Below are positions 8,584-46,287 of a stretch of 64,000 nt of DNA, in pieces. The notes under the pieces were generated by a model. That model saw only the letters and a list, made by a program, of their open reading frames with translations. It ran no database searches and was not told the DNA's origin. The DNA comes from Malacoraja senta (lineage: Eukaryota), in assembly GCA_038087875.1 (NCBI GenBank), contig JAXLNO010005841.1, forward strand, positions 3,720,001 to 3,784,000, given 5' to 3'. Within the stretch, counting starts at the first letter, position 1, and the number at the start of each line of letters is the position of its first letter. The position numbers and the translations under genes are program-made.

Positions 8584-8623
8584 ATGATCTGGCAATATTG
8601 CTTCCCTCTGTTACTTCTCCAAG
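8584..8623 (+). CDS. MAG/Siglec-like gene, signal peptide exon (MIWQYCFPLLLLQG)
   Basis: Strong acceptor ttttcttttttccag at 8541, ATG at 8584, hydrophobic leader, phase-1 donor G|gtaaaa matching the V exon. Confidence 0.85.
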
Positions 8624-24930: not shown

Positions 24931-25242
24931 ATGAAGTGGCCGTTCTGTCCTGGTCGCGATGCGCGAGGTATCCCACCAACGTGACCTGCCGCTGCATTGT
25001 GCAATCCAACTCCCCCGTCAACGTAACATGGGGATTCCTGAACCGGACGATCACGATGACGGACACGGCCGGGGACGTCCGGGCAGATTGCGTTCGCCTC
25101 GGTTCGCTGGTGATCATCACACTGATCGTCCGCGGGGTAAACCTGACGGTGGAGACTGTGAACTTCTCGGCATCCAACCCTCTGTGGCTGGTCCCGTTGC
25201 GGGCGGAGCTGGAAGTCCGGACAGACGATGGGACGGGAGACG
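24931..25242 (+). CDS. MAG/Siglec-like gene, MAG-domain-5-like Ig exon
   Basis: Phase 1/1 exon: HEVAVLSWSRCARYPTNVTCRCIVQSNSPVNVTW, compared with MAG d5 SHCAAARDTVQCLCVVKSNPEPSVAF. Alternative in-frame acceptor at 24922. Donor gtaaga. Confidence 0.88.
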
Positions 25243-26295
25243 GTAAGAACTGAGTGTAAAGATGAACGCGGCGGAATTGGAAGAGGATGTGGTTGGCGCG
25301 AGGAGAACTTGCCAAATTGAGGTAGCACCAGGCATTCCAGCCTCTTGCTGTTGCTAACAACACACGTAAATCTAGCGCAGCGGGCAAAGCCTCCGCCTTG
25401 CGGCTCGAGAAACCCGGGTTAGTTCCGACCTCCGCCGTTGTCTGTGTGGAGTTTGCTAGTTCTCCGTGTGACTGGGTGGGAGATGGAATACATCGCAGCA
25501 AAGTGCGCGGTCATGCACTTTCCGAGTGGGAATAAAGGCGTAGACTATTTTCCAAATGAGGAGAGGATTCAGAAACCGCAGGTGTAAAGGGCCTATGGAG
25601 AGCTGGTGCAGGATTTCCAAATTGTTAATTTGAAAAACGAATCCGTAGTAAGTAAGGCAATGCAATGTTCTCATTTATTTTGAGAGGACTCATTTTTTTC
25701 CCAAAAACTCGTACGTATATTGAGGCTTGATAAGTGACTGGCCAGACACCATTTGTAGTATTGTGAGCAGTTTCGGGCCCCACATCTGAGGAGAGATGCG
25801 CTTGCTTCGCACATAGAAGGTTTACGAGAATGATGTTGAGGATGATTGGTGTAAAGTATGACGAGCGTTCGACGGCTCTGGGCCTCTACTCGCTGCATAT
25901 TAGGACTAGGGGGGACCTAATTGAAACTTACCGAATAATGAATGGCATGAATACAGTGGATATTGGAAAGATGTATCAACTACTGGAAGAGTCCAGGACA
26001 GAAGGGCATGGCCGAAATATAAAATGACGTGACTTGATAAAGGTGGTGAATCTGAGGAATCCATTGCCACAAACGGCTGCGGAGGCGGTCTTTGGGTATT
26101 TTAGAAGCGGAGGTTGATTGATCCTTGATTAATAAAGGTGTCAAAGGTTTCAGGGAAATGATCGGTGAAGATTCTCAGTTCAACTAATGTCTCAAGTCTG
26201 CTAAAGTACAAACTGTGTAAACATTAGAAATGGCTTAGTGCGATGGAAGAGGTGTCTTACAATCTTCTTACAAACTTAGATTCCCTCTTTTTCAG

Positions 26296-26436
26296 GTGCA
26301 ACGCATTCCAGTTCTGTGGGTCATTTTTCCCCAAACGAGATCCCAATGCTCCAAGAACCAGAACTCTCCCTCCTGCACCTGCTCCTCAGCCACACACTCG
26401 TTCGCCTAATCGTTTTCTCTCCACGCTCACTAGAAG
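26296..26436 (+). CDS. Candidate stalk or alternative exon of the MAG/Siglec-like gene
   Basis: Good acceptor ttccctctttttcag, open in phase 1 (GATHSSSVGHFSPNE...), phase-1 donor GAAG|gtgaca. No homology support. Confidence 0.25.
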
Positions 26437-26855
26437 GTGACACAGCAATCCTGAGACTACAGTCCAAGAGACCCTGCAGCTCACCTCACCTTGTTCCTTA
26501 AATCCCTACATTCACTCCGCATGACCTCCTAACTTTTCCTGTCTAGGTTGGTGGCTACAAAGTGGACAAATATCTCCTGTTGCTCAACATTACCTTTCGG
26601 CAAGAAATAGTTTTGACGCCATCACGAGGGAGGCTTAAAAACATCCAACGACGTACTAGGTTGTTGGGTTAATTGGGTACTGTTAATCGCACCTGGTGTG
26701 TGTGGGTTTGAGTTGCGGGACCTGCGGGGAAGTTGATGGGAATGTGGAAAGAATAACCTGGAATTAGTGGAAGACAAGTATTAATGGGGGTCTGTGTTGG
26801 TCTGAGACCTGAACTCTTGATTTTCTTTATGGGGGTGGGGTGTGGGGAGGAGGGA

Positions 26856-27036: not shown

Positions 27037-28089
27037 GACGGAGGGAGAGAGCGAGGACCCGCACGCTCTCTCTTTGACTCTACAACCTTAAAAAACTTTA
27101 ATTACGATGCGGTTGACCTAGCAAATTCAGGAGTTACTGCATGGTGGAGGAGATTAAAATAAGTGGAATGTCAGCGCAAAGATCCTTCAGTACTGCCCAT
27201 AGTGATGTACGTCTGAGAGTCATGGCGTCATAGCGTCTTAGAGACTGAAAACAGGCCCTTCCGCATAGCTTGCTCACCCCAGCCATCGTGGTCCATGTAC
27301 ACTAGGCACACCTACCTGCATTTGACCCATATCCCTCTAAACCTGTCCTATCTCTACATCTGTCTAAATGTTCCAAATACTTTGCGATAATACCTGGCTC
27401 AATCTACATCTTCCGGCAGCTTGTCCCATACAACCAGACGCAACCCGTTGAGTGAAAAAGTTACTCAGGTTACATCTCCCCCCCCTCACCTTAAACCTCT
27501 TTCCTTTGGTTCTGGACTCAAGCAGTTGAGGCAAGAGACTCTGTGCATCTACCCGAACTTTTACTGTCCTGATTTTGTACAGCGGTCTATTCCTCGCAAA
27601 CTTTGTACACTTAAATCCTTATATTCATATACAGAACCTCCTATTTCCTCTTTCCTATGTCTGTGGTACCAAAGTGGACCATGACCTATTGCTGCTAACC
27701 ATTCTCTTTCAGAATGCCCCGTGCTCGCCCAGAGACATTGTCCAACAGTGCAAATTTAACTCGGTACTTCCCGCCCGCAGTGCAGCTCTCCCTCAACCAA
27801 CCACGCCCATGGCGATCAGGATCCCCATCTAAGATAGTCACATTTTCATGCATTTGGCCCATTTCCTTGCAAACCTTTCCTATCCATGCACCTGCTGACA
27901 TGTCTTGGAAAAGTTGTTATTGCCCCTGCCGAACGAATTCATCTGATACTTTCCCATGTCGCGATGTGGATCTCACTCTTTCACCGTGAGTGGAATACGT
28001 TCTCAACTATGCGTCACAGTGGTGGCATGGAACTGGTGTTCAAGTCTCTGGAACTAGGCATGAACTCAGGATTTTCTTTATGAGGGGGG

Positions 28090-28385
28090 NNNNNNNNNNN
28101 NNNNNNNNNNNNNNNNNNNNNNNNNNNNNNNNNNNNNNNNNNNNNNNNNNNNNNNNNNNNNNNNNNNNNNNNNNNNNNNNNNNNNNNNNNNNNNNNNNNN
28201 NNNNNNNNNNNNNNNNNNNNNNNNNNNNNNNNNNNNNNNNNNNNNNNNNNNNNNNNNNNNNNNNNNNNNNNNNNNNNNNNNNNNNNNNNNNNNNNNNNNN
28301 NNNNNNNNNNNNNNNNNNNNNNNNNNNNNNNNNNNNNNNNNNNNNNNNNNNNNNNNNNNNNNNNNNNNNNNNNNNNNNNNNNNNN
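28090..28385. other. Assembly gap (296 N) between the last Ig exon and the TM exons
   Basis: Run of N. Confidence 1.
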
Positions 28386-29584
28386 CTGGAGGGGGGAAGA
28401 GCGGGGAAGAGGGAGGAAGAACGGGAGGGAGGGAGTACGAGGGAGAGAGAGAGCAAGGCAGGGGAGAGGGAGAAAGAGAGGGAGGGAGGGAGGGAGTGAA
28501 GGTGGGCGAGAGGGAGGGAGAGAGACAGATAGCTTGTTCTCAGTACACAAAATGTAGAAATATATAGACTGGGATAGAGAGAGAAAGCGTCAGGGAGAGT
28601 GGGAAGCGAACAATAGAGCAAGAGTGCAGCCCATTGACCTGCAGCTGGCATTGGTAAACATTTAGAAGGCACGCAATCAGGCAGCGCTGTTGCCAAGACT
28701 GACTCGAACACCGTGTCCTGTTCCCAAACTCGCGGCGTTCGACCTTTCAGTGTCAATAGCTTATGACATCAATTGCAGGTGGAATTTTCCACCCAAGCAC
28801 AACACATTAAATTCCGAATTTATCAACTGTAGCTGTTCTTTTTATGTTTCGATTCCAGGAGAAGGTGAGATAAGAATTGAATCAAAAGCGTCACATAAAC
28901 CAATATCGTGAATCAAGAATCAAACGGATTTAACTGTCGTATGTACAGTCAATGGAAAAATGAAATTCGTTTTTGCAGCAAAACAGATCTACACGTTCTA
29001 CGCTAATAGATGATATCAATTAAGTAAACAACCAATAATGTAATTATCACAATACAAGTGAAATTAAAAAAACATCAGTGCAACCAAAGACTCCGACCAC
29101 CATTTGTGTGAAAACGTTCCCCCTCAGATTCCTATTAAATATCGATGTCCTGCAGCAGTTTGCTTATTTTTTTAGCTGTTGGCCGATCAGTGGTAACTAG
29201 TTTTGGTTTTTCATGTTGGAATTTCGTCTGAACTATCCAATTTGTTGAGGAAATAACGACGTGTTTTATGCCGACATTGCTGTAGATGTCGTAGAGTCAT
29301 ATAGTTCTACACATCGGGAACAATCACTTTGGTCCAGCTGGCTCTGTCTCTCTTTTGAGCCGAAGGATTCCCCTTTGTTTTGTACTGTTCTATGCTCTCT
29401 CATCAAACTAATTGGAGAGATACGGGCCAGGCACACCCTTTCAACCTGCAATGCCTGAGCCAAAAATGATGCCACGTTAAACAAATCTCCTCAGTCTGCT
29501 GAGCGGTTTCGGCTCTGCTCGACCGGTTGCTGTAAATAGAAAGTGGGGATAGTAGACCTGTTAAAATACCACGTTTTCTCCCAG

Positions 29585-29702
29585 CAGAAGATTCCACCGA
29601 ATCCACCCCAAGCCTCCCACTGAACATTCACTCGTATGAACGGGATATCGGTCTGTCTGCTGGGATCCTGCTTAATATCGGTCTACTTCTTTATGGTTTA
29701 AA
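29585..29702 (+). CDS. Stalk+transmembrane exon, copy 1 (AEDSTESTPSLPLNIHSYERDIGLSAGILLNIGLLLYGLK)
   Basis: Acceptor cacgttttctcccag, phase 1 matching the Ig exon donor, S/T/P-rich stalk, 18-aa hydrophobic helix, donor AA|gtaagg. Confidence 0.75.
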
Positions 29703-32700
29703 GTAAGGAATACCGACCAAAACGCAGAAGAGGCGCATGTTCCTCTGCTGTTTTTTCTTACGTGCAGCAGTTTCTTTAAATATTTTAAGTGGATAGATCA
29801 AGCAAGTGGCGGAACGGTGGGGCGGCGGTAGAGTTGCAGAATCACAGCATCAGAGACCCGGGTTCGATCCTGACTACAGGCGCTTGTCTGTATGGAGTTT
29901 GTACGTTCTTCCAGTGAACTGCGTGGGCTTTCTCCGGTAGCTCTGGTTTCCACCCACACTCCAAAGACGTACAGGTTTGTAGGTTAATTGGCTTGGTAAA
30001 GTTGTAAATTGTCCCTTATGTTTGTTGGATAGTATCAATGTGCGATTGCAGTTAGTGGTCGGTCGGGCTGTTGGCCGGACGGACGACCGACCGGTGGGTG
30101 CTGTGAGGGGTCGGTCGGACTGTCGGCCGGCCGGTGTGTGCAATGAGGGGTCGGTGGGCTGTCGGCCGGCAGGTGGGTGCAATGAGGCGTCGGTCGTGCT
30201 GTCGGCCGGCCGGTGGGTGCTGAGAGGGGTCGGTCGGTGTAGATTAACAATATGTAGCAATGTTACAAAATTTTGAGATTTAAAAAATAAAGTCTGCAAT
30301 TTATCCCATCAGATAGAGCATAAAAAGAAGTTTAATTTGACACCTAATTCACTTTCATATCTTCAGTATTAAAAAAGTTATGGCCATTTTCATACTCGGC
30401 AATTAGCATCTTGTTCCCTATTGCTTTTCCATTGATTTAACACAAAAGCTGTGATCGAGGACAGTCAAAAGCCCATAACTTTCTTAAAAATTAAGAGAAC
30501 TGGAAGAAATTTTCAGTTATTATAGATTGAAGCATTCAGAAACAAATATGAATGGAAAAATGAAATTCGTTTTTGCAGCAGCAAAACAGATCTACACGTT
30601 CCACGCTAATAGATGACATCAATTAAGTAAACAACCAATAATGTAACTATCACAATACAAGTGAAATAAAAAAAAACATCAGTGCAACCGAAGACTCCGA
30701 CCACCATATGTGTGAAAACGTCCCCCCTCAGATTCCTATTAAGTATTTCCCCTTGAACTTAAACCTATGCCGTCTTGTTCTCGATTCACCTACTCTGGAC
30801 AAACGACTATGTGTATTTACCCAATCTATACCACTCTTGAATTTATAGACCTCTAAAAGACCACCCCTCATTCTCGATGCGCGCCAGGGTATAGACTCCC
30901 AGTCTTCTCAACCTATCCCTGTAGCTCAGAGCCTCTTGTTCTGGCAATATCCTCGTAAATCTTCTCTGTACCCTTCCAGCTTGAAAACATCTTTCCAATA
31001 ACTTGGTGCCAAGAACTTAACACAATACTCTAAATGCGGTCTCACCAACGTTTTATACCACTTACGTTAGCTCTATCAATTTTCTACACATAAGGGGCAA
31101 TTTATGGTGGCCTATCAATTTTCTACACATAAGGGGCAATTTATGGTGGCCTATCAAAGCTGCAGTCTTTGGAATGCGGGAGGACACGGGAACTCCACGA
31201 ACAAGCACACGAGCGCGCAGGGACAACGTGCAAACGCCACGCAGACAGCACGATGCAAGGATCGAACCCAGGTCTTTGGCGCTGTGAGGCAGCAACTCGA
31301 TTCGCCTTGCCACCGTGCCGCAGTGTGAAAGAGCCTGATGGTTGTCATGGAAACAAGCCCTTTGGCCCAACCAGCCAACGCTGAACATAGATCACTCAGT
31401 CACAATATCTCTATGCTATTTGATGCTATGCACCTTCACGTCGCATTTTCTCGTGGAAAACCTACAGGTCCGGCACTTCCAACCACCCGAGGAGGCCAGA
31501 TGGTCGGAAAATCCGCCCGCCCCCCGCCCCCCATCCCCACATAGACACACATCATTCTTAATAGGCCCTGCAAGCTAGATGTCTTCATAAACCATGCAGG
31601 GTGAAGCAACACGTGACCAACCTTGGAGGAAATACCCAACCATATGTGCCGAGGGACCTTGAAGGCCAGTGATCAGATTTTCAAACTGACTGCACACTGG
31701 AGAGGCAATACTGAGATATTTGACAATGCAGACATGCTTTTCCAAAAGGCCAAAGTGGCTCACAAGTCATAAGGTCATGTGATAGAAATGGAATTAGGCC
31801 ATTCGGCCCATCAAGTCTCCGCCGTTCATTCGTGGCTGATCTATCTCTTCCTCCCAACTCTATTCTCCCGCCTTTTCCCCATGACCTCTGACACCTGTAC
31901 TAATTAAAAATATATCCTCTCTGCTTTAACAATATCAACTGTCTTGGCCTCTACATCTTTCTGTGGCAAAGAATTCCACAGATTCACCACCCCCTAATTA
32001 AAGAAATCTCTCATCTCCTTCCTAAAATAACTAAAATATGGTTCTGGGCGAACTGGAACCGCCTTGAGTACGCATTTGCAAGCGGACAAAATAGTACGAA
32101 TGTAGGATGGCAAGCAAAGTGCCCGCTTTTCACGAAGGGCAGTGATGAATACCCTGGTACATTACAGACATAATGAGCCAACATCAGTAAGAGACTGCAG
32201 ATGCTTGAATCTCTAGTAAAAGGCAAACAGCTGGAGGAACTCAGTGGGATAGGAAGAACGTGAGGAGAAAAATGGACCAGTCTGAAGAAGGGACCCACCC
32301 CTTCATGTCGTCTGTCCAATATCCTCCACGCATTCCGCCCGACCCGTTGAGCTCGTCTAGCAGTTTATCTTTTGCTCGAGACTTCATCATTTGCAGTCTC
32401 TTGCCTTCCCCAAATATCGATGTCCTGCAGCAGTTTGCTTATTTTTTTAGCTGTTGGCCGATCAGTGGTAACTAGTTTTGGTTTGTCATGTGGAAATTTC
32501 GTCTGAACTATCCAATTTGTTGAGGAGATAACGACGTGTTTTATGCCGACATTGCTGTAGATGTCGTAGAGTCATATTGTTCTACACATCGGGAACAGGC
32601 ACTTTGGTCCAGCTGGCTCTGGCTCCCTTTTGACCCGAAGGTTTCCGCTTTGTTTTGTACTGTTCTATGCTCTCTCATCAAACTGATTGGAGAGATACCG

Positions 32701-32859
32701 GCAAGGCACACCCTTTCAACCTGCAATGCCGGAGCCAAAAATGATGCCACGTTAAACAAATCTCCTCAGTCTGCTGAGCGGTTTCGGCTCTGCTCGACCG
32801 TTTGCTGTAAATAGAAAGTGGGGATAGTAGACCTGTTAAAATACCACGTTTTCTCCCAG

Positions 32860-32977
32860 CAGAAGATTCCACCGAATCCACCCCAAGCCTCCCAGTGAAC
32901 ATTCACTCCTATGAACGGGATATCGGTCTGTCTGCTGGGATCCTGCTTAATATCGGTCTACTTCTTTATGGTTTAAA
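32860..32977 (+). CDS. Stalk+transmembrane exon, copy 2 (L>V in stalk)
   Basis: Same 118-nt exon, intact splice sites and frame. Confidence 0.7.
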
Positions 32978-35900
32978 GTAAGGAATACCGACCAAAACGC
33001 AGAAGAGGCGCATGTTCCTCTGCTGTTTTTTCTTACGTGCAGCAGTTTCTTTAAATATTTAAAGTGGATAGATCAAGCAAGTGGCGGGACGGTGGGGCGA
33101 CGGTAGAGTTGCAGAATCACAGCATCAGAGACCCTGGTTCGATCCTGACTACGGGCGCTTGTCTGTATGGAGTTTGTACGTTCTTCCAGTGAACTGCGTG
33201 GGCTTTCTACGGTAGCTCTGGTTTCCACCCAAACTCCAAAGACGTACAGGTTTGTAGGATAATTGGCTTGGTAAAATTGTAAATTGTCCCTTATGTGTGT
33301 TGGATAGTATCAATGTGCGATTGCAGTTAGGGGTCGGTCGGGCTGTTGGCCGGACGGCCGACCGACCGGTGGGTGCTGTGAGGGGTCGGTCGGGCTGTCG
33401 GCCGGCAGGTGTGTGCAATGAGGGGTCGGTGGGCTGTCGGCCGGCAGGTGGGTGCAATGAGGCGTCGGTCGTGCTGTCGGCCGGCCGGTAGGTGCTGAGA
33501 GGGGTCGGCCGGTGTAGATTAACTATATGTAGCAATGTTACAAAATTTTGAGATTTAAAAAATCAAGTCTGCGATTTATCCCATCAGATAAAGCATAAAA
33601 AGAAGTTTAATTTGACACCAAATTCACTTTCATATCTTCAGTATTAAAAAGGTTATGCCCATTTTCATACTCGGAAATTAGCATCTTGTTCCCTATTGCT
33701 TTTCCATTGATTTAACACAGAAGCTGTGATCGAGGACAGTCAAAAGCCCATATCTTTCTTAAAAATTAAGAGAACTGAAAGAAATTTTCAGTTATTATAG
33801 ATTGAAGCATTCAGAAACAAATATGAAACAATCTTACTTAGATGACATGAAATTAAAGCATATAATTAGTTAGTTACCTTGCAGGTGGAATTTTCCATCC
33901 AAGCACAACACATTAAATTCCGAATTTGTCAACTGTAGCTGTTCTTTTTCTGTTTCGATTCCAGGAGAAGGTGGGATAAGAATTGAATCAAAAGCGTCAC
34001 ATAAACCAATATCGTGAATCAAGAATCAAACGGATTTAACTGTCGTATGTACAGTCAATGGAAAAATGAAATTCGTTTTTGCAGCAGCAAAACAGATCTA
34101 CACAGTTCTACGCTAATAGATGATATCAATTAAGTAAGCAACCAAAAATGTAATTATCACAATGCAAGTGAAATAAAAAAAACATCAGTGCAACCAAAGA
34201 CTCCGACCACCATTTGTGTGAAAACGTTCCCCCTCAGATTCCTATTAAGTATTTCCCCTTGAACTTAAGCCGCTGTCGTCTTGTTCTCGATTCACCTACT
34301 CTGGACAAGCGACTATGTGCATCTACCCAATCTATACCACTCTTGAATGTATGGACCTCTAAAAGACCACCCCTCATTCTCCTTGCGCGCCAGGGAATAG
34401 AATCCCAGTCATCTCAACCTATTCCTGTAGCTCAGAGCCTCTTGTTCTGGCAATATCCGCGTAAATCTTCTCTGTACCCTTCCACCTTGACAACATCTTT
34501 CCAATAACTTGGTGCCAAGAACTTAACACAATACTCTAAATGCGGTCTCACCAACGTGTTATACCACTTACGTTAGCTCTATCAATTTTCTACACATAAG
34601 GGGCAATTTATGGTGGCCTATCAAAGCTGCAGTCTTTGGAATGCGGGAGGACACGGGAACTCCACGAACAAGCGCACGAGGGCGCAGGGACAACGTGCAA
34701 ACTCCACACAGACAGCACAATGCAAGGATCGAACCCAGGTCTTTGGCGCTGTGAGGCAGCAACTCGACTCGCCTTGCCACCGTGCCGCAGTGTGAAATAG
34801 CCTGATGGTTGTCATGGAAACAAGCCCTTTGGCCCAACCAGCCAACGCTGAACATAGATCACTCAGTCATAATATTTCTATGCTATTTTATGCTATGCAC
34901 CTTCACGTCGCATTTTCTCGTGGAAAACCTACGGGTCCGGCACTTCCAACCACCCGAGGAGGCCAGATGGTCGGAAATTCCGCATGCCCCCCCGCCCCCC
35001 ATCCCCACATAGACACACATCATTCTTAATAGGCCCTGTAAGCTGGATGTCTTCAGAAACCATGCAGGGTGAAGCAACACGTGACCAACCTTGGAGGAAA
35101 TACCTAACCACATGTGCCGAGGGACCTTTAAGGCCAGTGATCAGATTTTCAAACTGACTGCACACTGGAGAGGCAATACTGAGATATTTGACAATGCAGA
35201 CATGCTTTTCCAAAAGGCTAAAGTGGCTCACAATGCATAAGGTCATGTGATAGAAATGGAAATAGGCCATTCGGCCCATGAAGTCTTCGCCGTTCATTCA
35301 TGGCTGATCTATCTCTTCCTCCCAACTACATTCTCCCGCCTTCTCCCCATGACCTCTGACACCTGTACTAATTAAAAATATATCCTCTCTGCCTTAACAA
35401 TATCAACTGTCTTGGCCTCTACATCTTTCTGTGGCAAAGAATTCCACAGATTCACCACCCCGTAATTAAAGAAATCTCTCATCTCCTTCCTAAAATAACT
35501 AAAATATGTTTCTGGGCGAACTTGAACCGCCTTGAGCACGCATTTGCAAGCGGACAAAATAGTACGAATGTAGGATGGCAAGCAAAGTGCCCGCTTTTCA
35601 CGAAGGGCAGTGATAAATACCCTGGTACATTACAGACATAATGAGCCGAACATCAGTAAGAGACTGCAGATGCTTGAATCTCTAGTAGGAGGCAAACTGC
35701 TGGAGGAACTCAGTGGGATAGGAAGAACGTGGGGAGAAAAATGGACCAGTCTGAAGAAGGGACCCACCCCTACATGTCATCTGTCCAATATCCTCCGCGC
35801 ATTCCGCCCGACCCGTTGAGTTCGTCTAGCAGTTTTGCTCGAGACTTCATCATTTGCAGTCTCTTGCCTTCCCCAAATATCGATGTCCTGCAGCAGTTTG

Positions 35901-36320
35901 CTTATTTTTTTAGCTGTTGGCCGATCAGTGGTAACTAGTTTTGGTTTGTCATGTGGAAATTTCGTCTGAACTATCCAATTTGTTGAGGAGATAACGACGT
36001 GTTTTATGCCGACATTGCTGTAGATGTCGTAGAGTCATATAGTTCTACACATCGGGAACAGGCACTTTGGTCCAGCTGGCTGTCTCTCTTTTGAGCCGAA
36101 GGATTCCGCTTTATTTTGTACTGTTCTATGCTCTCTCATCAAAGTGATTGGAGAGATATGGGCAAGGCACACCCTTTCAACCTGCAATGCCTGAGCCAAA
36201 AATGATGCCACGTTAAACAAATCTCCTCATTCTGGTGAGCGGTTTCGGCTCTGCTCGACCGGTTGCTGTAAATAGAAAGTGGGGATAGTAGACCTGTTGA
36301 AATACCACGTTTTCTCCCAG

Positions 36321-36438
36321 CTGAAGATTCCACCGAATCCACCCCAAGCCTCCCACTGAACATTCACTCGTATGAACGGGTTATCGGTCTGTCTGCTGGG
36401 ATCCTGCTTAATATCGGTCTACTTCTTTATGGTTTAAA
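36321..36438 (+). CDS. Stalk+transmembrane exon, copy 3 (D>V just before the TM)
   Basis: Same 118-nt exon, intact splice sites and frame. Confidence 0.7.
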
Positions 36439-39400
36439 GTAAGGAATACCGACCAAAACGCAGAAGAGGCGCATGTTCCTCTGCTGTTTTTTCTTACGTG
36501 CAGCCGTTTCTTTAAATATTTTAAGTGGATAGATCAAGCAAGTGGCGGGACGGTGGGGCGACGGTAGAGTTGCAGAATCACAGCATCAGAGACCCTGGTT
36601 CGATCCTGACTACGGGCGCTTGTCTGTATGGAGTTTGTACGTTCTTCCAGTGAACTGCGTGGGCTTTCTCCGGTAGCTCTGGTTTCCACCCACACTCCAA
36701 AGACGTACAGGTTTGTAGGTTAATTGGCTTGGTAAAATTGTAAATTGCCCCTTATGTGTGTTGGATAGTATCAATGTGCGATTGCAGTTAGGGGTCGGTC
36801 GGGCTGTTGGCCGGACGGCCGACCGACAGGTGGGTGCTGTGAGGGGTCGGCCGGGCTGTCGGCCGGCAGGTGTGTGCAATGAGGGGTCGGTGGGCTGTCG
36901 GCCGGCAGGTGGGTGCAATGAGGCGTCGGTCGTGCTGTCGGCCGGCCGGTAGGTGCTGAGAGGGGTCGGCCGGTGTAGATTAACTATATGTAGCAATGTT
37001 ACAAAATTTTGAGATTTAAAAAATCAAGTCTGCGATTTATCCCATCAGATAAAGCATAAAAAGAAGTTTAATTTGACACCAAATTCACTTTCATATCTTC
37101 AGTATTAAAAAAGTTATGCCCATTTTCATACTCGGAAATTAGCATCTTTTTCCCTATTGCTTTTCCATTGATTTAACACAGAAGCTGTGATCGAGGGCAG
37201 TCAAAAGCCCATAACTTTCTTAAAAATTAAGAGAACTGAAAGAAATTTTCAGTTATTATAGATTGAAGCATTCAGAAACAAATATGAAACAATCTTACTT
37301 AGATGACATGAAATTAAAGCATATAATTAGTTAGTTACCTTGCAGGTGGAATTTTCCATCCAAGCACAACACATTAAATTCCGAATTTGTCAACTGTAGC
37401 TGTTCTTTTTCTGTTTCGATTCCAGGAGAAGGTGGGATAAGAATTGAATCAAAAGCGTCACATAAACCAATATCGTGAATCAAGAATCAAACGGATTTAA
37501 CTGTCGTATGTACAGTCAATGGAAAAATGAAATTCGTTTTTGCAGCAGCAAAACAGATCTACACAGTTCTACGCTAATAGATGATATCAATTAAGTAAGC
37601 AACCAAAAATGTAATTATCACAATGCAAGTGAAATAAAAAAAACATCAGTGCAACCAAAGACTCCGACCACCATTTGTGTGAAAACGTTCCCCCTCAGAT
37701 TTCTATTAAGTATTTCCCCTTGAACTTAAGCCGCTGTCGTCTTGTTCTCGATTCACCTACTCTGGACAAGCGACTATGTGCATCTACCAAATCTATACCA
37801 CTCTTGAATGTATGGACCTCTAAAAGACCACCCCTCATTCTCCATGCGCGCCAGGGAATAGAATCCCAGTCTTCTCAACCTATCCCTGTAGCTCAGAGCC
37901 TCTTGTTCTGGCAATATCCGCGTAAATCTTCTCTGTACCCTTCCACCTTGACAACATCTTTCCAATAACTTGGTGCCAAGAACTTAACACAATACTCTAA
38001 ATGCGGTCTCACCAACGTGTTATACCACTTACGTTAGCTCTATCAATTTTCTACACATAAGGGGCAATTTATGGTGGCCTATCAAAGCTGCAGTCTTTGG
38101 AATGCGGGAGGACACGGGAACTCCACGAACAAGCGCACGAGGGCGCAGGGACAACGTGCAAACTCCACACAGACAGCACAATGCAAGGATCGAACCCAGG
38201 TCTTTGGCGCTGTGAGGCAGCAACTCGACTCGCCTTGCCACCGTGCCGCAGTGTGAAATAGCCTGATGGTTGTCATGGAAACAAGCCCTTTGGCCCAACC
38301 AGCCAACGCTGAACATAGATCACTCAGTCATAATATTTCTATGCTATTTTATGCTATGCACCTTCACGTCGCATTTTCTCGTGGAAAACCTACGGGTCCG
38401 GCACTTCCAACCACCCGAGGAGGCCAGATGGTCGGAAATTCCGCATGCCCCCCCGCCCCCCATCCCCACATAGACACACATCATTCTTAATAGGCCCTGT
38501 AAGCTGGATGTCTTCAGAAACCATGCAGGGTGAAGCAACACGTGACCAACCTTGGAGGAAATACCTAACCACATGTGCCGAGGGACCCTTAAGGCCAGTG
38601 ATCAGATTTTCAAACTGACTGCACACTAGACAGGCAATACTGAGATATTTGACAATGCAGACATGCTTTTCCAAAAGGCTATAGTGGCTCACAATGCATA
38701 AGGTCATGTGATAGAAATGGAAATAGGCCATTCGGCCCATCAAGTCTTCGCCGTTCATTCATGGCTGATCTATCTCTTCCTCCCAACTACATTCTCCCGC
38801 CTTCTCCCCATGACCTCTGACACCTGTACTAATTAAAAATATATCCTCTCTGCCTTAACAATATCAACTGTCTTGGCCTCTACATCTTTCTGTGGCAAAG
38901 AATTCCACAGATTCACCACCCCGTAATTAAAGAAATCTCTCATCTCCTTCCTAAAATAACTAAAATATGATTCTGGGCGAACTTGAACCGCCTTGAGCAC
39001 GCATTTGCAAGCGGACAAAATAGTACGAATGTAGGATGGCAAGCAAAGTGCCCGCTTTTCACGAAGGGCAGTGATAAATACCCTGGTACATTACAGACAT
39101 AATGAGCCGAACATCAGTAAGAGACTGCAGATGCTTGAATCTCTAGTAGGAGGCAAACTGCTGGAGGAACTCAGTGGGATAGGAAGAACGTGGGGAGAAA
39201 AATGGACCAGTCTGAAGAAGGGACCCACCCCTACATGTCGTCTGTCCAATATCCTCCGCGCATTCCGCCCGACCCGTTGAGTTCGTCTAGCAGTTTTGCT
39301 CGAGACTTCATCATTTGCAGTCTCTTGCCTTCCCCAAATATCGATGTCCTGCAGCAGTTTGCTTATTTTTTTAGCTGTTGGCCGATCAGTGGTAACTAGT

Positions 39401-39783
39401 TTTGGTTTGTCATGTGGAAATTTCGTCTGAACTATCCAATTTGTTGAGGAGATAACGACGTGATTTATGCCGACATTGCTGTAGATGTCGTAGAGTCATA
39501 TAGTTCTACACATCGCGAACAGGCACTTTGGTCCAGCTGGCTCTGTCTCTCTTTTGAGCCGAAGGATTCCGCTTTATTTTGTACTGTTCTATGCTCTCTC
39601 ATCAAATTGATTGGAGAGATATGGGCCAGGCACACCCTTTCAACCTGCAATGCCTGAGCCAAAAATAATGCCACGTTATACAAATCTCCTCAGTCTGGTG
39701 AACGGTTTCGGCTCTGGTCGACCGGTTGCTGTAAATAGAAAGTGGGGATAGTAGACCTGTTGAAATACCACGTTTTCTCCCAG

Positions 39784-39901
39784 CAGAAGATTCCACCGAA
39801 TCCACCCCATGCCTCCCACTGAACATTCACTCGTATGAACGGGATATCGGTCTGTCTGCTGGGATCCTGCTTAATATCGGTCTACTTCTTTATGGTTTAC
39901 A
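39784..39901 (+). CDS. Stalk+transmembrane exon, copy 4 (S>C in stalk, K>Q after the TM)
   Basis: Same 118-nt exon, intact splice sites and frame. Confidence 0.7.
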
Positions 39902-40413
39902 GTAAGGAATACCGACCAAAACGCAGAAGAGGCGCATGTTCCTCTGCTGTTTTTTCTTACGTGCAGCAGTTTCTTTAAATATTTTAAGTGGATAGATCAA
40001 GCAAGTGGCGGAACGGTGGGGCGGCGGTAGAGTTGCAGAATCACAGCATCGGAGACCCTGGTTCGATCCTGACTACGGGCGCTTGTCTGTATGGAGTTTG
40101 TACGTTCTTCCAGAGAACTGCGTGGGCTTTCTCCGGTAGCTCTGGTTTCCACCCACACTCCAAAGACGTACAGGTTTGTAGGTTAATTGGCTTGGTAAGA
40201 TTGTAAATTGTCCCTTATTTGTGTTGGATAGTATCAATGTGCGATTGCAGTTAGGGGTCGGTCGGGCTGTTGGCCGGACGGCCGACCGACCGGTGGGTGC
40301 TGTGAGGGGTCGGTCGGGCTGTCGGCCGGCAGGTGGGTGCAATGAGGCGTCGGTCGAGCTGTCGGCCGGCCGGTGGTTGCTGAGAGGGGTCGGTCGGTGT
40401 AGATTAACTATAT

Positions 40414-41450
40414 GTAGCAACGTTACAAAATTTTGAGATTTAAAAAATAAAATCTGCAATTTATCCCATCAGATAAAGTATAAAAAGAAGTTTAATTTGA
40501 CACCTAATTCACTTTCATATCTTCAGTATTAAAAAGGTTATGGCCATTTTCATACTCGGAAATTAGCATCTTGTTCCCTCTTGCTTTTCCATTGATTTAA
40601 CACAAAAGCTGTGATCGAGGACAGTCAAAAGCCCATAACTTTCTTAAAAATTAAGAGAACTGAAATAAATTTTCAGTTATTATAAATTGAAGCATTCAGA
40701 AACAAATATGAAACAATCTTACTTAGATGACATGAAAAGAAAGCATATAATTAGTTAGTTACCTAATTGTAGCTAATTACAAAATTCAATTACTAGATCT
40801 AAATATCTATCAATTTCTTAAGAATAGATTAACATTTATAAATAGCCTAAGTGTCCAAATAACATTCACACAAGAATTCACAATATAACATAATTTTTAA
40901 ATTTCATTGTCATGGATTTACAGGCCAAATGGAAGGAATTGAATGTTTAATACCTGTAAATTAATGGTCATTTAAATCATTTTACGAGTGAGGTTTTCTG
41001 GAACACGATCATTTGGAACGTTGATTTGCGGTGAATTTAACCCCATATCGGCATGAAAAATTCTGCCGTTAGTTGGGGGAAAAGAATCACCGTTTCGCAT
41101 TTAAAAAAAAATGAATTAAAGGCTTCTTAAGAAGCACTTTTATACATTAAAATAAACTACTTTCCTTTACCTGCCCCGTGTGCGAAAATCGTCCCCGTTG
41201 TCGGCGTTGTTTCGAAGCTGATTTTAAAATAACTCCAGCGCTGACATTGTCCATTTAATAAAAATAAAAAATACACAAAACGCCCGTAGGAACGATTTTT
41301 CAGCAAACGCTTGTACTCCAACGAAATATAATACAGGACAAGGTAGGAGAAACCCGCGTTTTAACCCCCCCGTCAAAGGCGCCAAAATCGCGCACACGGC
41401 CAGTGGCAGAATTGCAGCGCCGCTGACGGTAAGTATTGTAACATATCTAC
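40414..41450. mobile_element. Non-autonomous TIR DNA transposon (1037 bp); truncated copies end array units 1-3
   Basis: Left end GTAGCAACGTTACAAAA versus right-end reverse complement GTAGATATGTTACAATA (13/17). TATAT direct repeats at 40409-40413 and 41451-41455. Confidence 0.65.
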
Positions 41451-41899
41451 TATATGAACCTACCTTTCCCATATCTATCACCACACGTATTATGCATGCT
41501 GCACATTGCATATGTAGACCAGTCCGGATCTTCATCCCTATCATGGTTCTTCACCATCTCACGGTAAGACTTGATGCTGACTACGGAGACGATAGCACGT
41601 AATGATTCCTCCGCTTGTGTTACAATAAAGGTCTATGAGTTGTTATTCCTCTGTATGGGACTCATTACACAATAGTCGGCCTGTCGGCCGGCCGGTGGGT
41701 TCTGTAAGGGATCCGTCGGGCTGTCGGCCGACCGGTGGTGCAGCGACGAGCGGGCGGACTGATGGAGCTTGCGCTATGGGGGTGCTGAATGCGGCCCTGG
41801 ACCGAGCTGAGCAGCAGGGCGGAAGAGAGTGTGTCAGTCAGTCCGTCGGGCAGATGGCCGGCCGGTGGGTGCTGTGTGGGATCCGTCGGGCTTGTGAGA

Positions 41900-44490
41900 T
41901 GATGGTTCCGTAGATTCATAACACCGGTGAAGGAGCTGTCCCTGAATCTGGATGTTTGCGTTTTATAACATGTGTATCTCTTGTCTGATGGAAATGAATT
42001 GTGTGATACCGGTCCACGATTAAGCTGGTGACCATGCCGATGCAGCGTGAAATGTAGCTGGAGTCGATTGAAGGGAGTTTGTTTGGCGTGATGGTCAGGG
42101 CTACGTCCACAATTCTCTGCATTTCCTAGCAGTCTTGGATGCAGCTGTTCCTCAAACATTTTGCGATGCACACCGAGAAGTTGCTTTCTACGGCGCATCT
42201 GTGTGTGTTTTAGTGGTATGATGGGAACATGCAGAACTTACTAAACCTTCTATAACAAAATAGTGGCGATGTTATGATTTATTGGGCATTACTTCGTTGT
42301 GGCTGGTCCAAGACAAATTGCTGGTAATATTTAATCCTAACAATTTTTATTCTCAATTCATTTTACTTTATTGTCAAGTGTGCCACGGCACAGTGAAAAT
42401 ATTGTCTTGCGTGCTATCCCGTCATCATAAACTCAATACATGATTACATGCGAGTCATTTAGTTTGTATATACATGATAAGGGGATAATGTTTAGTGCAT
42501 GGTTAAGCCAGCAAAGCCCGATAAAGAATATTACGAGGGACACCAAAGAGGTAGGTAGCAGTTCAGTACTTCTCTCTCTTTGTGGGGGATAATTCAGTTT
42601 TCTGAGAACAGCTGGGAAGAACTTGTCCCTGAATCCGTAAGTGTGCGTTTGCACACTTCTTTATGTTTTGCCTCATGAGAATGGCGGACGAGGGAGTGGC
42701 CAGAGTGCGACTCGTTCTTGATTATGCTGCTGGTCTTGCCGAGGAAGCGTGGGTATAAATGCAGTCAATCGAACGAAGGTTGGTTTGTGTGATGGTCTAG
42801 GCTGCGCCCACAATTCTCTGTATTGTTTTGCGGTCTTGGGTTCCCAAACCGTAGTGATATATCGTGATACAATGATGTCTATGTTGCACATGTAGAAATT
42901 GTTGAGAGTTGTTGGGGACATGCCGCATTTCCGATGCCTTCTAAGGAATTAGATGCGTTTGGTGTGCTTTCTTGGTCGTTGCTTCAATATGGGTGGTCCA
43001 GGAGAATTTGTTGGTGATATTCACTCCTTGGTATTTGAAGTGTTCATTTATGTCTACGTCGGCACCGTCAATGTAATCTGGGGTACTTCTTTACTTCCTG
43101 AAGGTCATAATCTCATTTGTCTTGCTGACATTGAGAGAAAGGGTGTTGTCTCGACACCAGGACGCGAGGTTCTCAGTCTCCTTCCTGTACTATGTCGCAT
43201 CATTATTTGATATCCTGCCCACAATGGTGGTGTCGGCCGCGAAATTGAAAATTGAATTAGATTTGTACATGCATGCACAATCATGGGTGTACGAGGAGTA
43301 AAGAAGGGGGCTCAGAAACCATCCTTGCGGAGTGCCCGGGTTGATGATTGTCGAAGAGGATGGTTTTCCCCTGATCTTTACTCAATGGGGTCTGTTGGTC
43401 AGGAAGTCGAGGGTCCAGTTCCAGAGAACAGGACTGACACCAAAACTTCCGAGTTTGGCGATAGCCTTGGATGGTATAATGGTATTAAAGGCAGAGGCAC
43501 AATGTTTGAATACATGTCTGAATTAGGTATCGCTCTTATCCAGATGTTATAGGGATGAGTGTCGGGCTAGAGCGGTGATATCGTCCATGGACTTATTGTG
43601 GCGGTAGGCGAACTACAGTGGGTCAAGGCCGCTGGTAAGACTAGATTTAAGGCATTCCATATCTAGCTTCTCAAAACATTTCACTATGATAAATGTCAAG
43701 GTGACTGGAGGGTATCGTTTAGGGATGAGATTTAGCTTTTCTTCAGCATTGTTATCATGGTGGTCTTCTTGAAGCAGGTGGGTAGTGAGAACGGTGATGG
43801 GAGAGATGAAAGATGTCCGCTGGGTGGTTCGCACTGTGACTAAGCACACGGCCTGGAAATACTTCTGGGCCAGTTGCTTTTCGTGGGTTTACCCTCAGGA
43901 ATGCCGATCGAACGCCTGCTACAATCATTCTGGGGAGGGGCACATTGTAGTCTAACGTGTCAGGTGATCACGGCCTTCTGCTCGAAGCGAGCATAGAAAG
44001 CTTAGGGTCGCACTATCGCCAATGATGACACCTGACCTTGCATTGCAGCCAATTATCATATTCAGACCTTGCCAGATTATCCGTGTGTCCGAGTGATTAC
44101 ACTAGGACGCAGGTTTGTCCCGGTATTGTCTCTTGGCATCCTTGATGGCTACGCGGAGATCAAAGCGGGCCTTCTTGTCCCGCTAGGGATCCTTTGACTT
44201 TTTCGCAGAAAACCGGACCTTAACCTGTGAATGTACCTCACGATCGGCACAAGAAGCTGAGGTTACTCAGCGGGTCAGACAGCACCCCTGGGGAAAAGGA
44301 ATAAGCGACGTTTCATGTCCAGACCTTTCTTCGGACCTCGCGGTTCATCCGTGGTTTCCGGATGTGGAAGACTTTTATTTACTTCGACGGCGCACAGCCG
44401 CCCACGCACTCGCTGGTGACATCAGTCACGGCATTGTTGTCCTCATTCAGGTTCGCTGCGGAATCCCTGAATATGAACCTGGGGAACTTA
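41900..44490 (-). mobile_element. Rex1/Babar or L2-type LINE fragments, continuing at 46288-46900
   Basis: ORFs 43613-43943 (RVNPRKATGP, CFEKL, LDPL) and typical 3' fragments at ~41920-42200 and ~42540-42900. Confidence 0.75.
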
Positions 44491-46287
44491 TTATTTATTT
44501 TTTTTTGAAAATATTTTTTATTGGAGAAAAGTACACAACCTATTAACATCATTACAGTCTTACATTTTTAAATTGATAATATTATCAATTATTATCAATT
44601 ATTATTACATTGTCTCCAATACCTTTTGCCTTTAAAAAAAAAAACTAGATAGAACTAAAAAGATAGATGAAGTAAAGAAAGAAAAGAGTGAGAAGAAAAA
44701 GAGAAAAGAGAAAACAAAACAAAAAAAAAAAAAAACAGAAAAAAAAGAAAAAAAAACAACAACAAAAAAAAAGATGGTTAAAGAAGAATGGAAACATTTA
44801 TTAATCATGGTGGTCTTCTTGAAGCAGGTGGGTAGTGAGAACATAATAAAAAATTTCATTCGAGATATATTCGTACATATCAGAGTGTAGCATTTCATCC
44901 ATTCTTTAGCCCGAGCATTAGTCAGGTTCCTGTGCTGAACCATTCTGACCCTTTAAATAATCAATAAAGGGAGACCATGTTCCCACGAATAATTCCTGTT
45001 TGTCCAACAGGGGAAATCTGATACTTTCCACGTTTAAGGTCTCCGTCATTTCTATAATCCACATTTTGATTGTGGGGGCCGTAGGGCCTTTCCAAAATTT
45101 TAGAATTAATTTTTTTCCTGTTATTATACTATAATCAATAAAGTTTCTTTGTGTTGTTGTAAATGTTTGATTTAATTCTAATGTTCCGAGTATTATTAAT
45201 TTTGGATCCGGGTCCACTTGTGTGCTGGTCACTTTAGATATTATACTAAAAATATTTACCCAGAACTTTTTAATTTTTATACAGTTTGCAAACATATGAG
45301 ATAAGGTAGCTTCTAAATGTTGACATTTATCACATATAGGTGAGATATGTTGAAAGATTTTATGTAATTTTGTTTTTGAATAATGTAACCTATGTATTAC
45401 TTTAAATTGTATTAAAGAATGTCTGGCATTTAATGAACATTGATGTATGTGTTGTAAACTTTCTTCCCAAGTATCTTTCGTTATTATTTGATTTAATTCT
45501 TTTTCCCATGTTTGTCTGTGTAAGTCCGTCGATGGAATGTCACTGTCTAATAAGATATTATATATATAAGATATTAATTTTTCTGTATTAGGATGTTTAT
45601 TCCAACATTCGTCAAGAATTTCTGAATTTCTAATTCGAAAATTTTGAGTATTCGATTTTACATAATCTCTGAGTTGAAGATATCTGAAATAATCATTTCC
45701 TCGAAGTCCATAAGTCTGTTGCAACTCCTGAAATGTCAGAAAAGTGCCTTCCTTATAAAGTTGTCCCATATTTTTAATTCCATAATTCTTCCATTGTGTA
45801 AAACCCCTGTCCAACCATGAGGGCTAAAACAAAGGGTTATTCACAATTGGGAGAAAAAGTGATAAATTATCTAATTTTAATGTCTTTTTTAATTGTTTCC
45901 AAATTCGTATGGCACTAAATATTATAGGGTTTTCCCTATAATTTTTTTTGTTTAATTTAGATGTAGCAAATAATATCGAACCGATATCAAAAGGCAAACA
46001 ATCTTCCTTTTCCATTTTTAACCAATCTGGTTGTTGATCTATTTATTCCAACCAGAAATTCATATTTTTAATATTAACTGCCCAAAAATAAAACAGAAAG
46101 TTGGGTAAAACCAAACCTCCATTTATTTTTGATTTACACAAATGTCTTTTGTTTATCCTATGATTCTTATAATCCCAGATAAAATGATTAACAATGGAGT
46201 CCAATTTTTTAAAAACGTTTTTTGACAAATATATCGGAATTGTCTGAAAAAGGTATAATATTTGCGGTAAAAAAATCATTTTTATGG
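44491..46287 (-). mobile_element. 5'-truncated L1-clade LINE (end of RT, zf-RVT C-terminus, 3' UTR, poly-A)
   Basis: ORF 44918-45814 has CDKC...HMFANC (CCHC) and LIQFKVIHR. ORF 46043 has AIKMIFLP and GGLVLPN. A-rich tail with AATAAA at ~44491-44525. Confidence 0.92.

Follow-up and report, generated by a model that had tools for sequence, protein, structure and literature searches.

A young head-to-tail array of four stalk and transmembrane exons in a skate MAG-like/Siglec-like receptor gene, probably a neutral tandem duplication

Why would a single immune-type receptor gene carry four intact copies of the exon that anchors its product in the membrane? In a window of 64,000 nucleotides from the skate Malacoraja senta (i.e. 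the whole stretch of DNA analyzed here), a 118-nt exon encoding the stalk and transmembrane (TM) segment is present four times on the plus strand, with every copy intact and in open frame. An initial annotation of this sequence read these copies as necessarily mutually exclusive, with one ectodomain that could be joined to any of four alternative membrane anchors, as in a young Dscam-type cassette. We find that a different reading is better placed, with a probability of roughly 0.6: the array is a young, lineage-specific, neutral, and possibly copy-number-variable intragenic tandem segmental duplication, not a working cassette.

The gene that hosts the array is ordered as signal, V, C2, Ig3, and Ig4 exons, followed by alternative 3' exons (Table 1). 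Its V exon scores 27.6 bits against Ig_CD22 (cut-off 27) and 27.2 bits against V-set (cut-off 26) in Pfam. An N-terminal V-set domain of the Siglec/CD22 type is thus followed by C2-set domains, as in Siglecs, and the nearest proteins bear names such as MAG-like, Siglec, or sialoadhesin-like; both the Pfam matches (Ig_CD22/V-set and Ig_2/Ig_3) and these names uphold the assignment to a Siglec/MAG-like gene. The sialic-acid-binding Arg of strand F is absent in a by-eye reading (YYFYVELDG in the window vs YYFRIEF and YHFRIEF in P0009 and P0003), and Tyr takes the place of the canonical Arg throughout the clade P0001-P0007, again by eye and not by structure-based alignment. The Ig4 exon has 56% identity to Ig4 of the Pristis protein P0002 and 92-95% nucleotide identity to its counterparts in the Amblyraja and Leucoraja loci. 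In database searches, the sole match of the Ig4 ORF is an unspliced genomic ORF from another skate, the TM-exon ORF has no match, and an Amblyraja protein used as query retrieves no protein from M. senta.

The four TM exon regions align without gaps, with 99% column identity. The acceptor ...TTTTCTCCCAG/ and the donor /GTAAGG are present in 4 of 4 copies, all sites being GT-AG. Each exon starts in phase 1, with the single codon base left by Ig4 completed as G+CA (Ala), and ends in phase 2 (AA/GT), i.e. the copies are adjacent homologous exons of equal length and phase. Their products are one or two residues apart, and all differences lie outside the identical TM core. Direct reading and the gap-free alignment thus agree with the initial annotation on the intact AG/GT sites, the open frames, the shared TM core, and the four replacements L>V, D>V, S>C, and K>Q, to which we add two silent changes (A>T at 29586 in copy 3, G>C at 29634 in copy 2). 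Counted from the first base of the exon, the diagnostic sites are +2 A/T and +61 A/T for copy 3, +36 C/G and +50 G/C for copy 2, and +27 A/T and +117 A/C for copy 4.

A shark homologue (locus L006) has a TM exon that also runs from phase 1 to 2, with the end AA/GTAAGT, and the TM motifs of the two compare as LSAGILLNIGL vs LAAGITLSIGL. Because the shark exon has the same phases and the same AA/GTAAG end, the exon type is genuine, and on this comparison the stalk and TM exon is shown to belong to the ancestral type of the family.

Since 118 nt is not divisible by 3, in-frame serial inclusion is impossible. Specifically, translation of two copies in series gives the frameshift that the initial annotation deduced from the phases, and a stop is reached after 17 codons of the second copy. 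The wording "necessarily" mutually exclusive is nevertheless too strong, because the product of double inclusion would still be anchored by its TM segment and end in a short basic tail. Joint inclusion thus runs against the frame rule; the introns of ~3.2 kb impose no steric hindrance.

Table 1. Positions of gene, array, and repeat features in the window (a slash in a sequence marks the exon-intron boundary)
Feature	Position	Strand	Basis or remark
Signal-peptide exon (MIWQYCFPLLLLQ...)	8584-8631	+	tblastn, Amblyraja MAG-like P0001 residues 1-16, 81% identity
V-set (Ig_CD22-type) exon	12768-13145	+	Approximate limits by homology; Pfam; 87% identity to P0001
C2-type Ig exon	14208-14498	+	tblastn, P0001 residues 134-230, 85% identity; Pfam Ig_2 match weak
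Third Ig exon (Ig3)	20086-20355	+	Pfam Ig_2/Ig_3; tblastn, P0001 residues 232-321, 87% identity
Fourth Ig-like exon (Ig4)	24931-25242	+	AG/GT flanks, phase-1 end (G/gtaaga), read directly
Assembly gap (N run)	28090-28385	.	~390 nt upstream of array; caution about array assembly
Array unit 1	28773-30552	+	X (28773-29142) joined straight to Y1 (29137-30552); self-BLAST, alignment
Array unit 2	30551-33878	+	Truncated X, then Z, then Y2
Array unit 3	33879-37339	+	X, Z, Y3; junction with unit 2 is TTACC(T)TGCAGG
Array unit 4	37340-40764	+	X, Z, Y4; junction as between units 2 and 3; homology to other units stops at 40764
Alternative phase-1 terminal coding exon in X (..EGEIRIESKASHKPIS-stop)	28859-28911	+	Alignment; repeats in X at ~33965 and ~37426
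Stalk and TM exon, copy 1	29585-29702	+	No private change
Stalk and TM exon, copy 2	32860-32977	+	L>V plus one silent change
Stalk and TM exon, copy 3	36321-36438	+	D>V plus silent change at exon base 2
Stalk and TM exon, copy 4	39784-39901	+	S>C, K>Q; donor ACA/GTAAGG, not AAA/GTAAGG
Peptide IGLSAGILLNIGLLLYGL, encoded four times	29647-29700, 32922-32975, 36383-36436, 39846-39899	+	
SINE fragment	36545-36759	+	~106 nt downstream of TM copy 3
Equivalent SINE arms, other copies	29809-30021, 33084-33298, 40008-40222	+	Sequence comparison
Inverted SINE fragment in Z	34592-34788	-	Upstream of TM copy 3
Equivalent inverted fragments in Z	31125-31321, 38053-38249	-	None upstream of copy 1
Further inverted SINE copy	47204-47401		

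Chance cannot account for four copies of such an exon, given that they are part of a tandem repeat. Self-BLAST and alignment resolve four 3.46-kb units that follow one another head to tail in the gene's 3' end, with an array period of 3461-3467 and start-to-start spacings of the exon copies of 3275, 3461, and 3463. The units are built from segments X (an alternative terminal exon), Z (intron and SINE), and Y (the stalk and TM exon, a SINE, and a 40-nt satellite). Unit 1 is without the 1.6-kb segment Z, the deletion lying between two AAATAT hexamers, and the X of unit 2 misses ~229 nt at the Y1/X junction; the unit-1 deletions are bounded by microhomology. Other indels are unit-specific (a 39-nt and a 2-nt deletion). 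The duplicated segment is the whole 3.46 kb, including SINEs and a second alternative exon, and not an exon-centred cassette. Head-to-tail units that carry their non-coding flanks and share identical novel junctions (SINEs, satellite, and two exons per unit) are what a structural variant produces.

The single-copy state is found in other skates, whose orthologous loci the initial annotation had proposed to compare. Leucoraja L002 and Amblyraja L004 each have one unit in the order X-Z-Y, in which only the start of Y is present: homology stops ~70-100 nt before the TM acceptor, and there is no TM exon. Amblyraja L001 has X and then early Z, with late Z and Y absent. The array is thus missing from both genera, which have one unit or part of one. 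A homologue of the X terminal exon closes the annotated 325-aa isoforms of Amblyraja and Leucoraja, with P0153 and P0151 ending in EGEIRIE / ESEIRRE. We propose that the X-Z-Y segment was duplicated head to tail, that the array probably grew to four units by unequal crossing-over, and that unit 1 would later have dropped Z together with part of the next X. The X terminal exon would serve a secreted form.

Sequence divergence bears on the age of the array and on selection. Over the 1.4-kb exon-bearing segment, pairwise divergence among the four copies is 2.1-3.6%, a wider range than the ~2% first estimated. Variable sites are as frequent in the exon copies as in the flanking intron (5.1% vs 5.7%; Fisher P = 1), and the exon changes comprise 4 nonsynonymous and 2 synonymous, a neutral-looking ratio, although a test that spans 118 nt x 4 and six changes has little power against weak constraint on one or all copies. 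Both figures argue against one ectodomain with four alternative anchors, and neither selection on each copy nor its conservation across species is seen, as Amblyraja and Leucoraja lack the array. The identical TM core is rejected as a mark of selection: at the flank rate, a 54-nt stretch would be free of variable sites with a probability of 0.04, and the flanking intron itself holds invariant runs of 73 and 67 nt, which bears out the caution already attached to this 54-nt core in the initial annotation. Copy 1 is without private change (0/2/2/2 for copies 1/2/3/4), which also fits one conserved functional copy and so speaks against neutral duplication; however, a zero here is not significant (P = 0.21), and we reject copy 1 as a conserved functional copy on this ground.

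Could the four units instead be an artefact, with a true locus of one or two units over-expanded by repeat mis-assembly or haplotype mixing? An N gap does lie just upstream of the array, and unit 1 is aberrant, being without Z and followed by a truncated X. A query of sequencing runs with the Ig4 exon returns only two full matches, X1 and X2, and both are genomic DNA, as intergenic unique sequence is covered at even depth. In X2, a 445-nt contig across the exon is consensus-like, matches none of the four copies exactly, and has ~1.3x the depth of neighbouring unique sequence, and the private letters of copy 4 at 39810 and 39900 are absent from the DNA contigs of both runs (A/A). By contrast, X1 contigs over the exon are fragmented, with ~2.7-3.2x depth, and the difference between the two runs hints at copy-number variation, although the depth of Logan contigs is no measure of copy number; contig assemblers also strip minority branches, so that missing private letters are expected. 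The copies are, moreover, separated by unit-specific indels and by a divergence far above that of haplotype duplication, and their duplication junctions are clean and identical, with unit-1 deletions that show microhomology as real ones do. Shared variants are tree-like, pairing Y2 with Y3 at 10 sites vs 4 and 1 for the other splits; judged from these sites, the pattern is one of real genealogy and not of random error. Copy number aside, haplotype duplication is unlikely given 2-3.6% divergence with this structure, and we regard an assembly artefact as a whole as quite unlikely.

The same searches bear on expression. No RNA run with the gene is found among the runs matched by the Ig4 exon, the small RNA run X6 (from another organism) matching repeats only, and the databases searched hold no transcript-derived protein of the gene. 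Contigs of the genomic-DNA runs have no exon-like joints on 39730-45729, a stretch without N runs.

In the sawfish locus L005 and in ray and shark proteins, cytoplasmic ITIM/ITSM exons follow the TM exon. The tail search combined tblastn with full-length proteins (including shark tails), 72 homologue tails, and ray and sawfish tail exons with a scan for double-ITIM motifs. It finds no ITIM tail exon downstream of the TM exons in the window (to 64 kb, i.e. up to 24 kb downstream), no common downstream exon there for the TM donor, and no tail exon in the Amblyraja and Leucoraja loci, although the tails used as queries evolve fast, and a short tail exon of a new kind could escape a search by homology. 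A candidate at 57214-57327 is rejected, as it contains a stop and is of low complexity. On this search, the window shows none of the ITIM exons of an inhibitory Siglec-like receptor.

Given near-identical splice signals in all four copies, the expected default is use of the first copy or serial inclusion. Under the first outcome, Ig4 would be joined to the first copy and the message would end there, with read-through of the donor giving ...YGLK-stop, as GTAAG provides an in-frame TAA. Under the second, later copies would follow in series, which shifts the frame so that translation ends within the second copy (...YGLNRRFHRIHPKPPSEHSLL-stop). Either would produce a tail-less anchored receptor or a target of decay, in line with skates having apparently lost the ITIM tail exons, and Amblyraja and Leucoraja the TM exon itself. 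The copies would then be redundant and simply carried along in a structural variant, with no regulation of which anchor is used.

These losses also suit a further alternative, in which skates make only secreted V-C2-Ig3 forms, and Ig4 and the TM copies are relics, i.e. pseudo-exons that have not yet acquired stops. The annotated Amblyraja and Leucoraja proteins are without Ig4 and TM, all isoforms ending after Ig3 in short alternative tails whose homologous positions lie at 26.2-28.9 kb of the window. In addition, Ig4 has a dN/dS of 0.68-0.87 between the window and Amblyraja/Leucoraja and is interrupted by a stop in one Amblyraja paralogue. However, dN/dS is similar in Ig3 (0.73), which is used, and in the window Ig4 and each of the four TM copies retain an open frame and intact AG/GT sites. 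The gene models of relatives may also be incomplete: in the sawfish locus, TM and ITIM exons are present and the gene model had missed both. We consider relic exons unlikely.

What of a nascent mutually exclusive cluster, in which each transcript would take one TM exon and the receptor would gain slightly different stalks, including a Cys variant? Equal length and phase, intact and near-identical splice sites, and a stop on double inclusion of 118-nt exons all favour it, and so does a SINE arm 106 nt downstream of each copy, with inverted partners in Z and at 47.2 kb. The arms are complementary at 72% over 179 nt, plus a 19-nt perfect match, and their duplex energies have z = -17 (Z arm) and -21 (47.2-kb copy) vs dinucleotide shuffles, z-scores alone being used here because the absolute energies look inflated. 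Inverted SINE pairs are, however, commonplace in introns and are not conserved signals, and no docking/selector system of the Dscam type is apparent, since the shared complementary elements are SINE fragments only and relatives are without the region. Tandem exon duplication is an accepted origin of mutually exclusive exon clusters, and such arms are the raw material demanded by the duplication model of Ivanov and Pervouchine (PMC6071210). Against the cluster stand exon copies that diverge like intron, an identical TM core that makes the "alternative anchors" functionally alike, the lack of a downstream exon in the window, sister genera without the array or even a TM exon, and near single-copy depth on the exon in a second DNA sample of this organism (X2). 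A cluster of this kind is distinctly unlikely, and its putative mechanism, exclusivity through the frame rule and nonsense-mediated decay, perhaps with competing SINE-arm pairings, is doubtful to the same degree. Very unlikely, in our view, is a productive cluster, mutually exclusive or otherwise, that is just emerging in a vertebrate gene whose ITIM tail has been lost, and that uses either a single copy chosen through competing SINE pairings or two copies in series. In the serial variant, the frame-shifted second copy would newly encode a basic juxtamembrane tail (NRRFHRIHPK...stop), which is missing from the tail-less single-exon form. Of the initial reading, then, four same-phase TM exons that allow no in-frame serial use remain, while the alternative anchors, the Dscam-type cassette, and a meaningful copy-4 Cys find no support.

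On the preferred reading of a neutral tandem duplication, the array mainly shows how rapidly the 3' end of a skate MAG-like/Siglec-like receptor gene has been restructured: one lineage has multiplied the TM exon, another has deleted it, and both have apparently lost the ITIM tail. Such turnover bears on how immune-type receptors switch among inhibitory, tail-less, and secreted forms. The array is also raw material for exclusive exons; if real and expressed, it would be a dated, very young example of a step behind such clusters, namely the joint copying of an exon with the adjoining intron and one of two complementary arms. Intact duplicated exons do not amount to functional diversity without evidence from RNA or conservation.

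Vertebrate mutually exclusive exons are reportedly homologous, same-length, frame-incompatible pairs or clusters (e.g. SCN alpha exon 5a/5b). The skate array resembles them in its adjacent homologous exons of equal length and phase, a co-duplicated flanking intron, and a length indivisible by three, and it shares duplicated intronic complementary arms with them and with the duplication model (PMC6071210). Unlike those clusters, which are old, conserved, under purifying selection, and exclusive as judged from RNA, the skate copies are 2-3.6% apart, lineage-specific, and intron-like in their evolution, encode nearly identical products, and have no common downstream exon in the window. Like the arthropod clusters of Dscam1, 14-3-3 zeta, and MRP1, the locus has one array of alternative exons with repeated intronic elements beside each, and, as in docking-site systems, its arms could pair with a single outside partner, the inverted SINE at 47.2 kb; it differs from them in having no conserved docking/selector pair, ordinary SINE fragments as arms, and no encoded diversity. 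Human intragenic tandem exon duplications (e.g. in dystrophin and BRCA1) are structural variants, often variable in copy number, in which serial inclusion is the default and causes a frameshift if the exon length is not divisible by three. The skate locus is like them in the head-to-tail repetition of a multi-kb exon-bearing segment with junction microhomology, and unlike them in having four units, kept long enough to diverge 2-3.6%, in a fast-evolving immune-type receptor gene with a 3' end that is already eroding. Finally, its V(Ig_CD22)-C2-Ig-Ig ectodomain is that of elasmobranch MAG-like/Siglec-like receptors (Chiloscyllium GCC37911.1, Mobula "sialoadhesin-like" P0169, and Hemitrygon "Siglec-14" P0170). 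The shark member GCC37911.1 (the L006 homologue above) shares the layout of the TM exon, and the TM motif G-L/F-x-AAG-I-x-L-x-IGL is common to skate and shark; unlike the skate gene within the window, these receptors have two or three further cytoplasmic exons, which bear ITIM/ITSM-like tyrosines.

The forward strand of the window encodes the peptide IGLSAGILLNIGLLLYGL 4 times, in 118-nt stalk and transmembrane (TM) exons whose polypyrimidine tract, CAG acceptor, and GTAAGG donor are identical in all 4 aligned copies. The upstream Ig4 exon (24931–25242) closes on a lone codon base, G, and therefore the TM exon starts in phase 1 (G+CA, i.e. Ala) and ends in phase 2 (AA/GT); Ig4 joined to any copy reads ...DDGTGDAEDSTESTPSLPLNIHSYERDIGLSAGILLNIGLLLYGL(K/N). 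Residue changes are L>V in copy 2, D>V in copy 3, and S>C and K>Q in copy 4, while 2 other changes are silent. The alignment and splice-phase reading thus agree with the initial annotation, which had described 4 intact copies with these phases and residue differences, whereas the divergence it gave as ~2% is measured at 2.1–3.6%.

The TM exons are carried along in an array of units repeated head to tail every 3461–3467 nt; we name this unit X-Z-Y. The array holds 4 Y, 3 Z, and 3 full plus 1 partial X segments. Unit 1 lacks Z, with the deletion lying between two AAATAT hexamers, and the X that follows it misses about 229 nt. The unit junction, TTACC(T)TGCAGG, is the same at units 2/3 and 3/4, and an assembly gap of 296 N lies 390 nt upstream of the array. 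In Amblyraja and Leucoraja, the orthologue of the X terminal exon forms the end of annotated 325-aa isoforms. The SINE of each unit is followed by a G+C-rich 40-nt satellite (GGTCGGTCGGGCTGTCGGCCGGC...), which reappears a short way 3′ of the array; in copy 4 it has one repeat fewer, i.e. a 39-nt deletion.

Features of the gene and its array in the window and of the sawfish locus (L005)
Feature	Position or length	Strand	Basis or content
Signal exon	8584-8631		Pfam and homology
Stalk+TM exon copy 1	29585-29702	+	four-region alignment
Stalk+TM exon copy 2	32860-32977	+	four-region alignment
Stalk+TM exon copy 3	36321-36438	+	four-region alignment
Stalk+TM exon copy 4	39784-39901	+	four-region alignment
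X segment	374 nt		alternative terminal exon, phase 1 (from 28859; EGEIRIESKASHKPIS-stop)
Z segment	about 1.6 kb		intron and SINE fragment
Y segment	about 1.45 kb		TM exon, SINE 106 nt downstream, 40-nt satellite
40-nt satellite stretches	30076-30237, 33368-33512, 36809-36973, 40292-40397, 41629-41910		
Sawfish TM and two cytoplasmic exons	L005:26928-27041, 31405-31503, 33689-33799		0.1-7 kb past annotated end

Pfam and homology place signal, V-set/Ig_CD22, C2, third Ig, and Ig4 exons in the gene. The closest proteins are "myelin-associated glycoprotein-like" products of Amblyraja radiata and Leucoraja erinacea (87% identity in V), followed by MAG-like/Siglec-like proteins of sawfish, ray, and shark. 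Sialic-acid-binding Siglecs bind their ligand through a key Arg. The V domain (12768–13145) reads YYFYVELDG vs YYFRIEF in arginine-bearing elasmobranch Siglec-like proteins, and Tyr at this position is common to the whole MAG-like clade (skates, sawfish, and sharks, proteins P0001–P0007), hence it characterises the clade rather than being a fault in this one gene. Open stretches at 26228–26500 and 27600–27760 (ATHSSSTGHY...STLTRR; RWLQIGRRSPAAQHYLSD...) are homologous to alternative C-terminal tails of annotated Amblyraja/Leucoraja isoforms and, on this homology, are candidate alternative 3′ exons skipping Ig4. The likely 3′ end of the Siglec-like gene is bounded by an intact 334-aa ORF (47736–48737, − strand; Pfam TAS2R, E = 3e-17), which is encoded on the other strand about 7 kb past the array. 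Near-identical open stretches (GSFDFFAENRTLTCECTSRSAQEAEV...; 44187–44543 and 46555–46866) around a LINE-like ORF (44921–45823, − strand) probably belong to the termini of a single transposable element.

Searches of sequencing runs with the Ig4 exon found it in full only in X1 and X2. Their contigs, placed on 39730–45729, cover intergenic unique sequence evenly, and both runs are therefore genomic DNA, not RNA; the protein databases searched contained no transcript-derived product of the gene. Contigs of both carry the copy 1–3 letters at the two private exon sites of copy 4. In X1 the exon region is fragmented, with a summed depth of about 2.7–3.2x nearby unique contigs, and in X2 one 445-nt contig spans the exon at about 1.3x, contig depth in these runs not being equal to copy number. 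That contig has 3 differences from copy 4 and exactly matches none of the 4 copies. The depth contrast is suggestive only, and may reflect copy-number variation between individuals or bubble-popping by the contig assembler.

Across the 1375 alignment columns of Y without gaps, 5.1% of exon columns vary vs 5.7% of non-exon columns (Fisher p = 1), and 4 of the 6 exon changes are nonsynonymous. The invariant run around the TM core (55 nt) is exceeded by intronic ones of 73 and 67 nt. Private exon changes number 0, 2, 2, and 2 in copies 1–4, the zero of copy 1 being not significant (P = 0.21). Shared variants group the Y segments of units 2 and 3 (10 sites vs 4 and 1), a genealogy such as a real array with homogenised middle units would be expected to produce.

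By comparison with its shark homologue, the TM exon is genuine as an exon type. The Chiloscyllium exon (97 nt) runs from phase 1 to phase 2 (AA/GTAAGT), the third base of its Lys coming from the following exon; this is exactly the phase layout of the window exon, and the two have a TM motif in common (LSAGILLNIGL vs LAAGITLSIGL). We also compared Leucoraja (L002), Amblyraja (L001 and L004), and sawfish (L005) loci. All 3 skate loci carry Ig4 at 92–95% nucleotide identity, and their annotated products end after Ig3. The comparison with orthologous skate loci proposed in the initial annotation yields no four-copy array: X-Z-Y(start) is single in L002 and L004, which makes the array specific to the lineage of the window. 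In these two loci Y homology ends about 70–100 nt before the TM acceptor, with unrelated sequence beyond; L001 lacks late Z and Y, and a TM exon is undetectable in all three. A block of about 4.7–5.4 kb inside Z that Amblyraja (L001:51333–55983) and Leucoraja (L002:38968–44390) have in common, absent from the window, is either an insertion in the Amblyraja and Leucoraja lineage or a deletion in the window. L004 also has duplicated signal (9977/54864) and C2 (34884/59354) exons.

In sawfish, a TM exon and 2 cytoplasmic exons with a DIYENY...NVYANV pair lie beyond the annotated gene end. The Pristis pectinata "sialoadhesin-like" model XP_051864872.1 stops after Ig4, with the ITIM-like pair encoded beyond, and is probably truncated. 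Similar tails occur in rays and sharks; such an exon is undetectable in the skate loci and across the window to 64 kb. Between the window and other skates, dN/dS is 0.25–0.42 in V and about 0.7–0.9 in Ig3 and Ig4, and Ig4 of the second A. radiata locus has a stop codon (L004:69544–69855). Together, these locus comparisons, the dN/dS values, and this stop indicate that the 3′ half of the gene is eroding or being remodelled in skates.

Splice signals are near-identical across the copies, with a slightly weaker donor in copy 4 (ACA/GT). After intragenic exon duplication, an upstream exon splices by default to the first acceptor met; most likely, Ig4 would join the first TM acceptor in this way. 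The donor could then go unused and the message end, an in-frame donor TAA giving ...YGLK-stop; AATAAA/ATTAAA hexamers lie 580–670 nt downstream. Otherwise, further copies could be joined in series, which translates as ...YGLNRRFHRIHPKPPSEHSLL-stop, and possibly lead to mRNA decay. Under both options the four "anchors" would be equivalent, and the array would act as a neutral structural variant.

Alternatively, the copies could be mutually exclusive exons steered by competing RNA structures. They are frame-incompatible, a SINE arm lies just downstream of each, and inverted arms occur in Z upstream of copies 2–4 and at 47204–47401, with pairing at z = −17 to −21 vs shuffles. However, inverted SINEs are common in introns, this arrangement shows no conservation, and a shared downstream exon was not found in the window, so we consider such regulation improbable. 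The four-anchor cassette of the initial annotation holds as structure (four intact same-phase copies) but not as function, the copies varying like intron in a lineage-specific array. The exons and SINE arms do match the configuration from which a published model derives competing RNA structures by duplication (PMC6071210). Tandem exon/segment duplication is a known type of event, of which this rapidly remodelling receptor gene provides another case.
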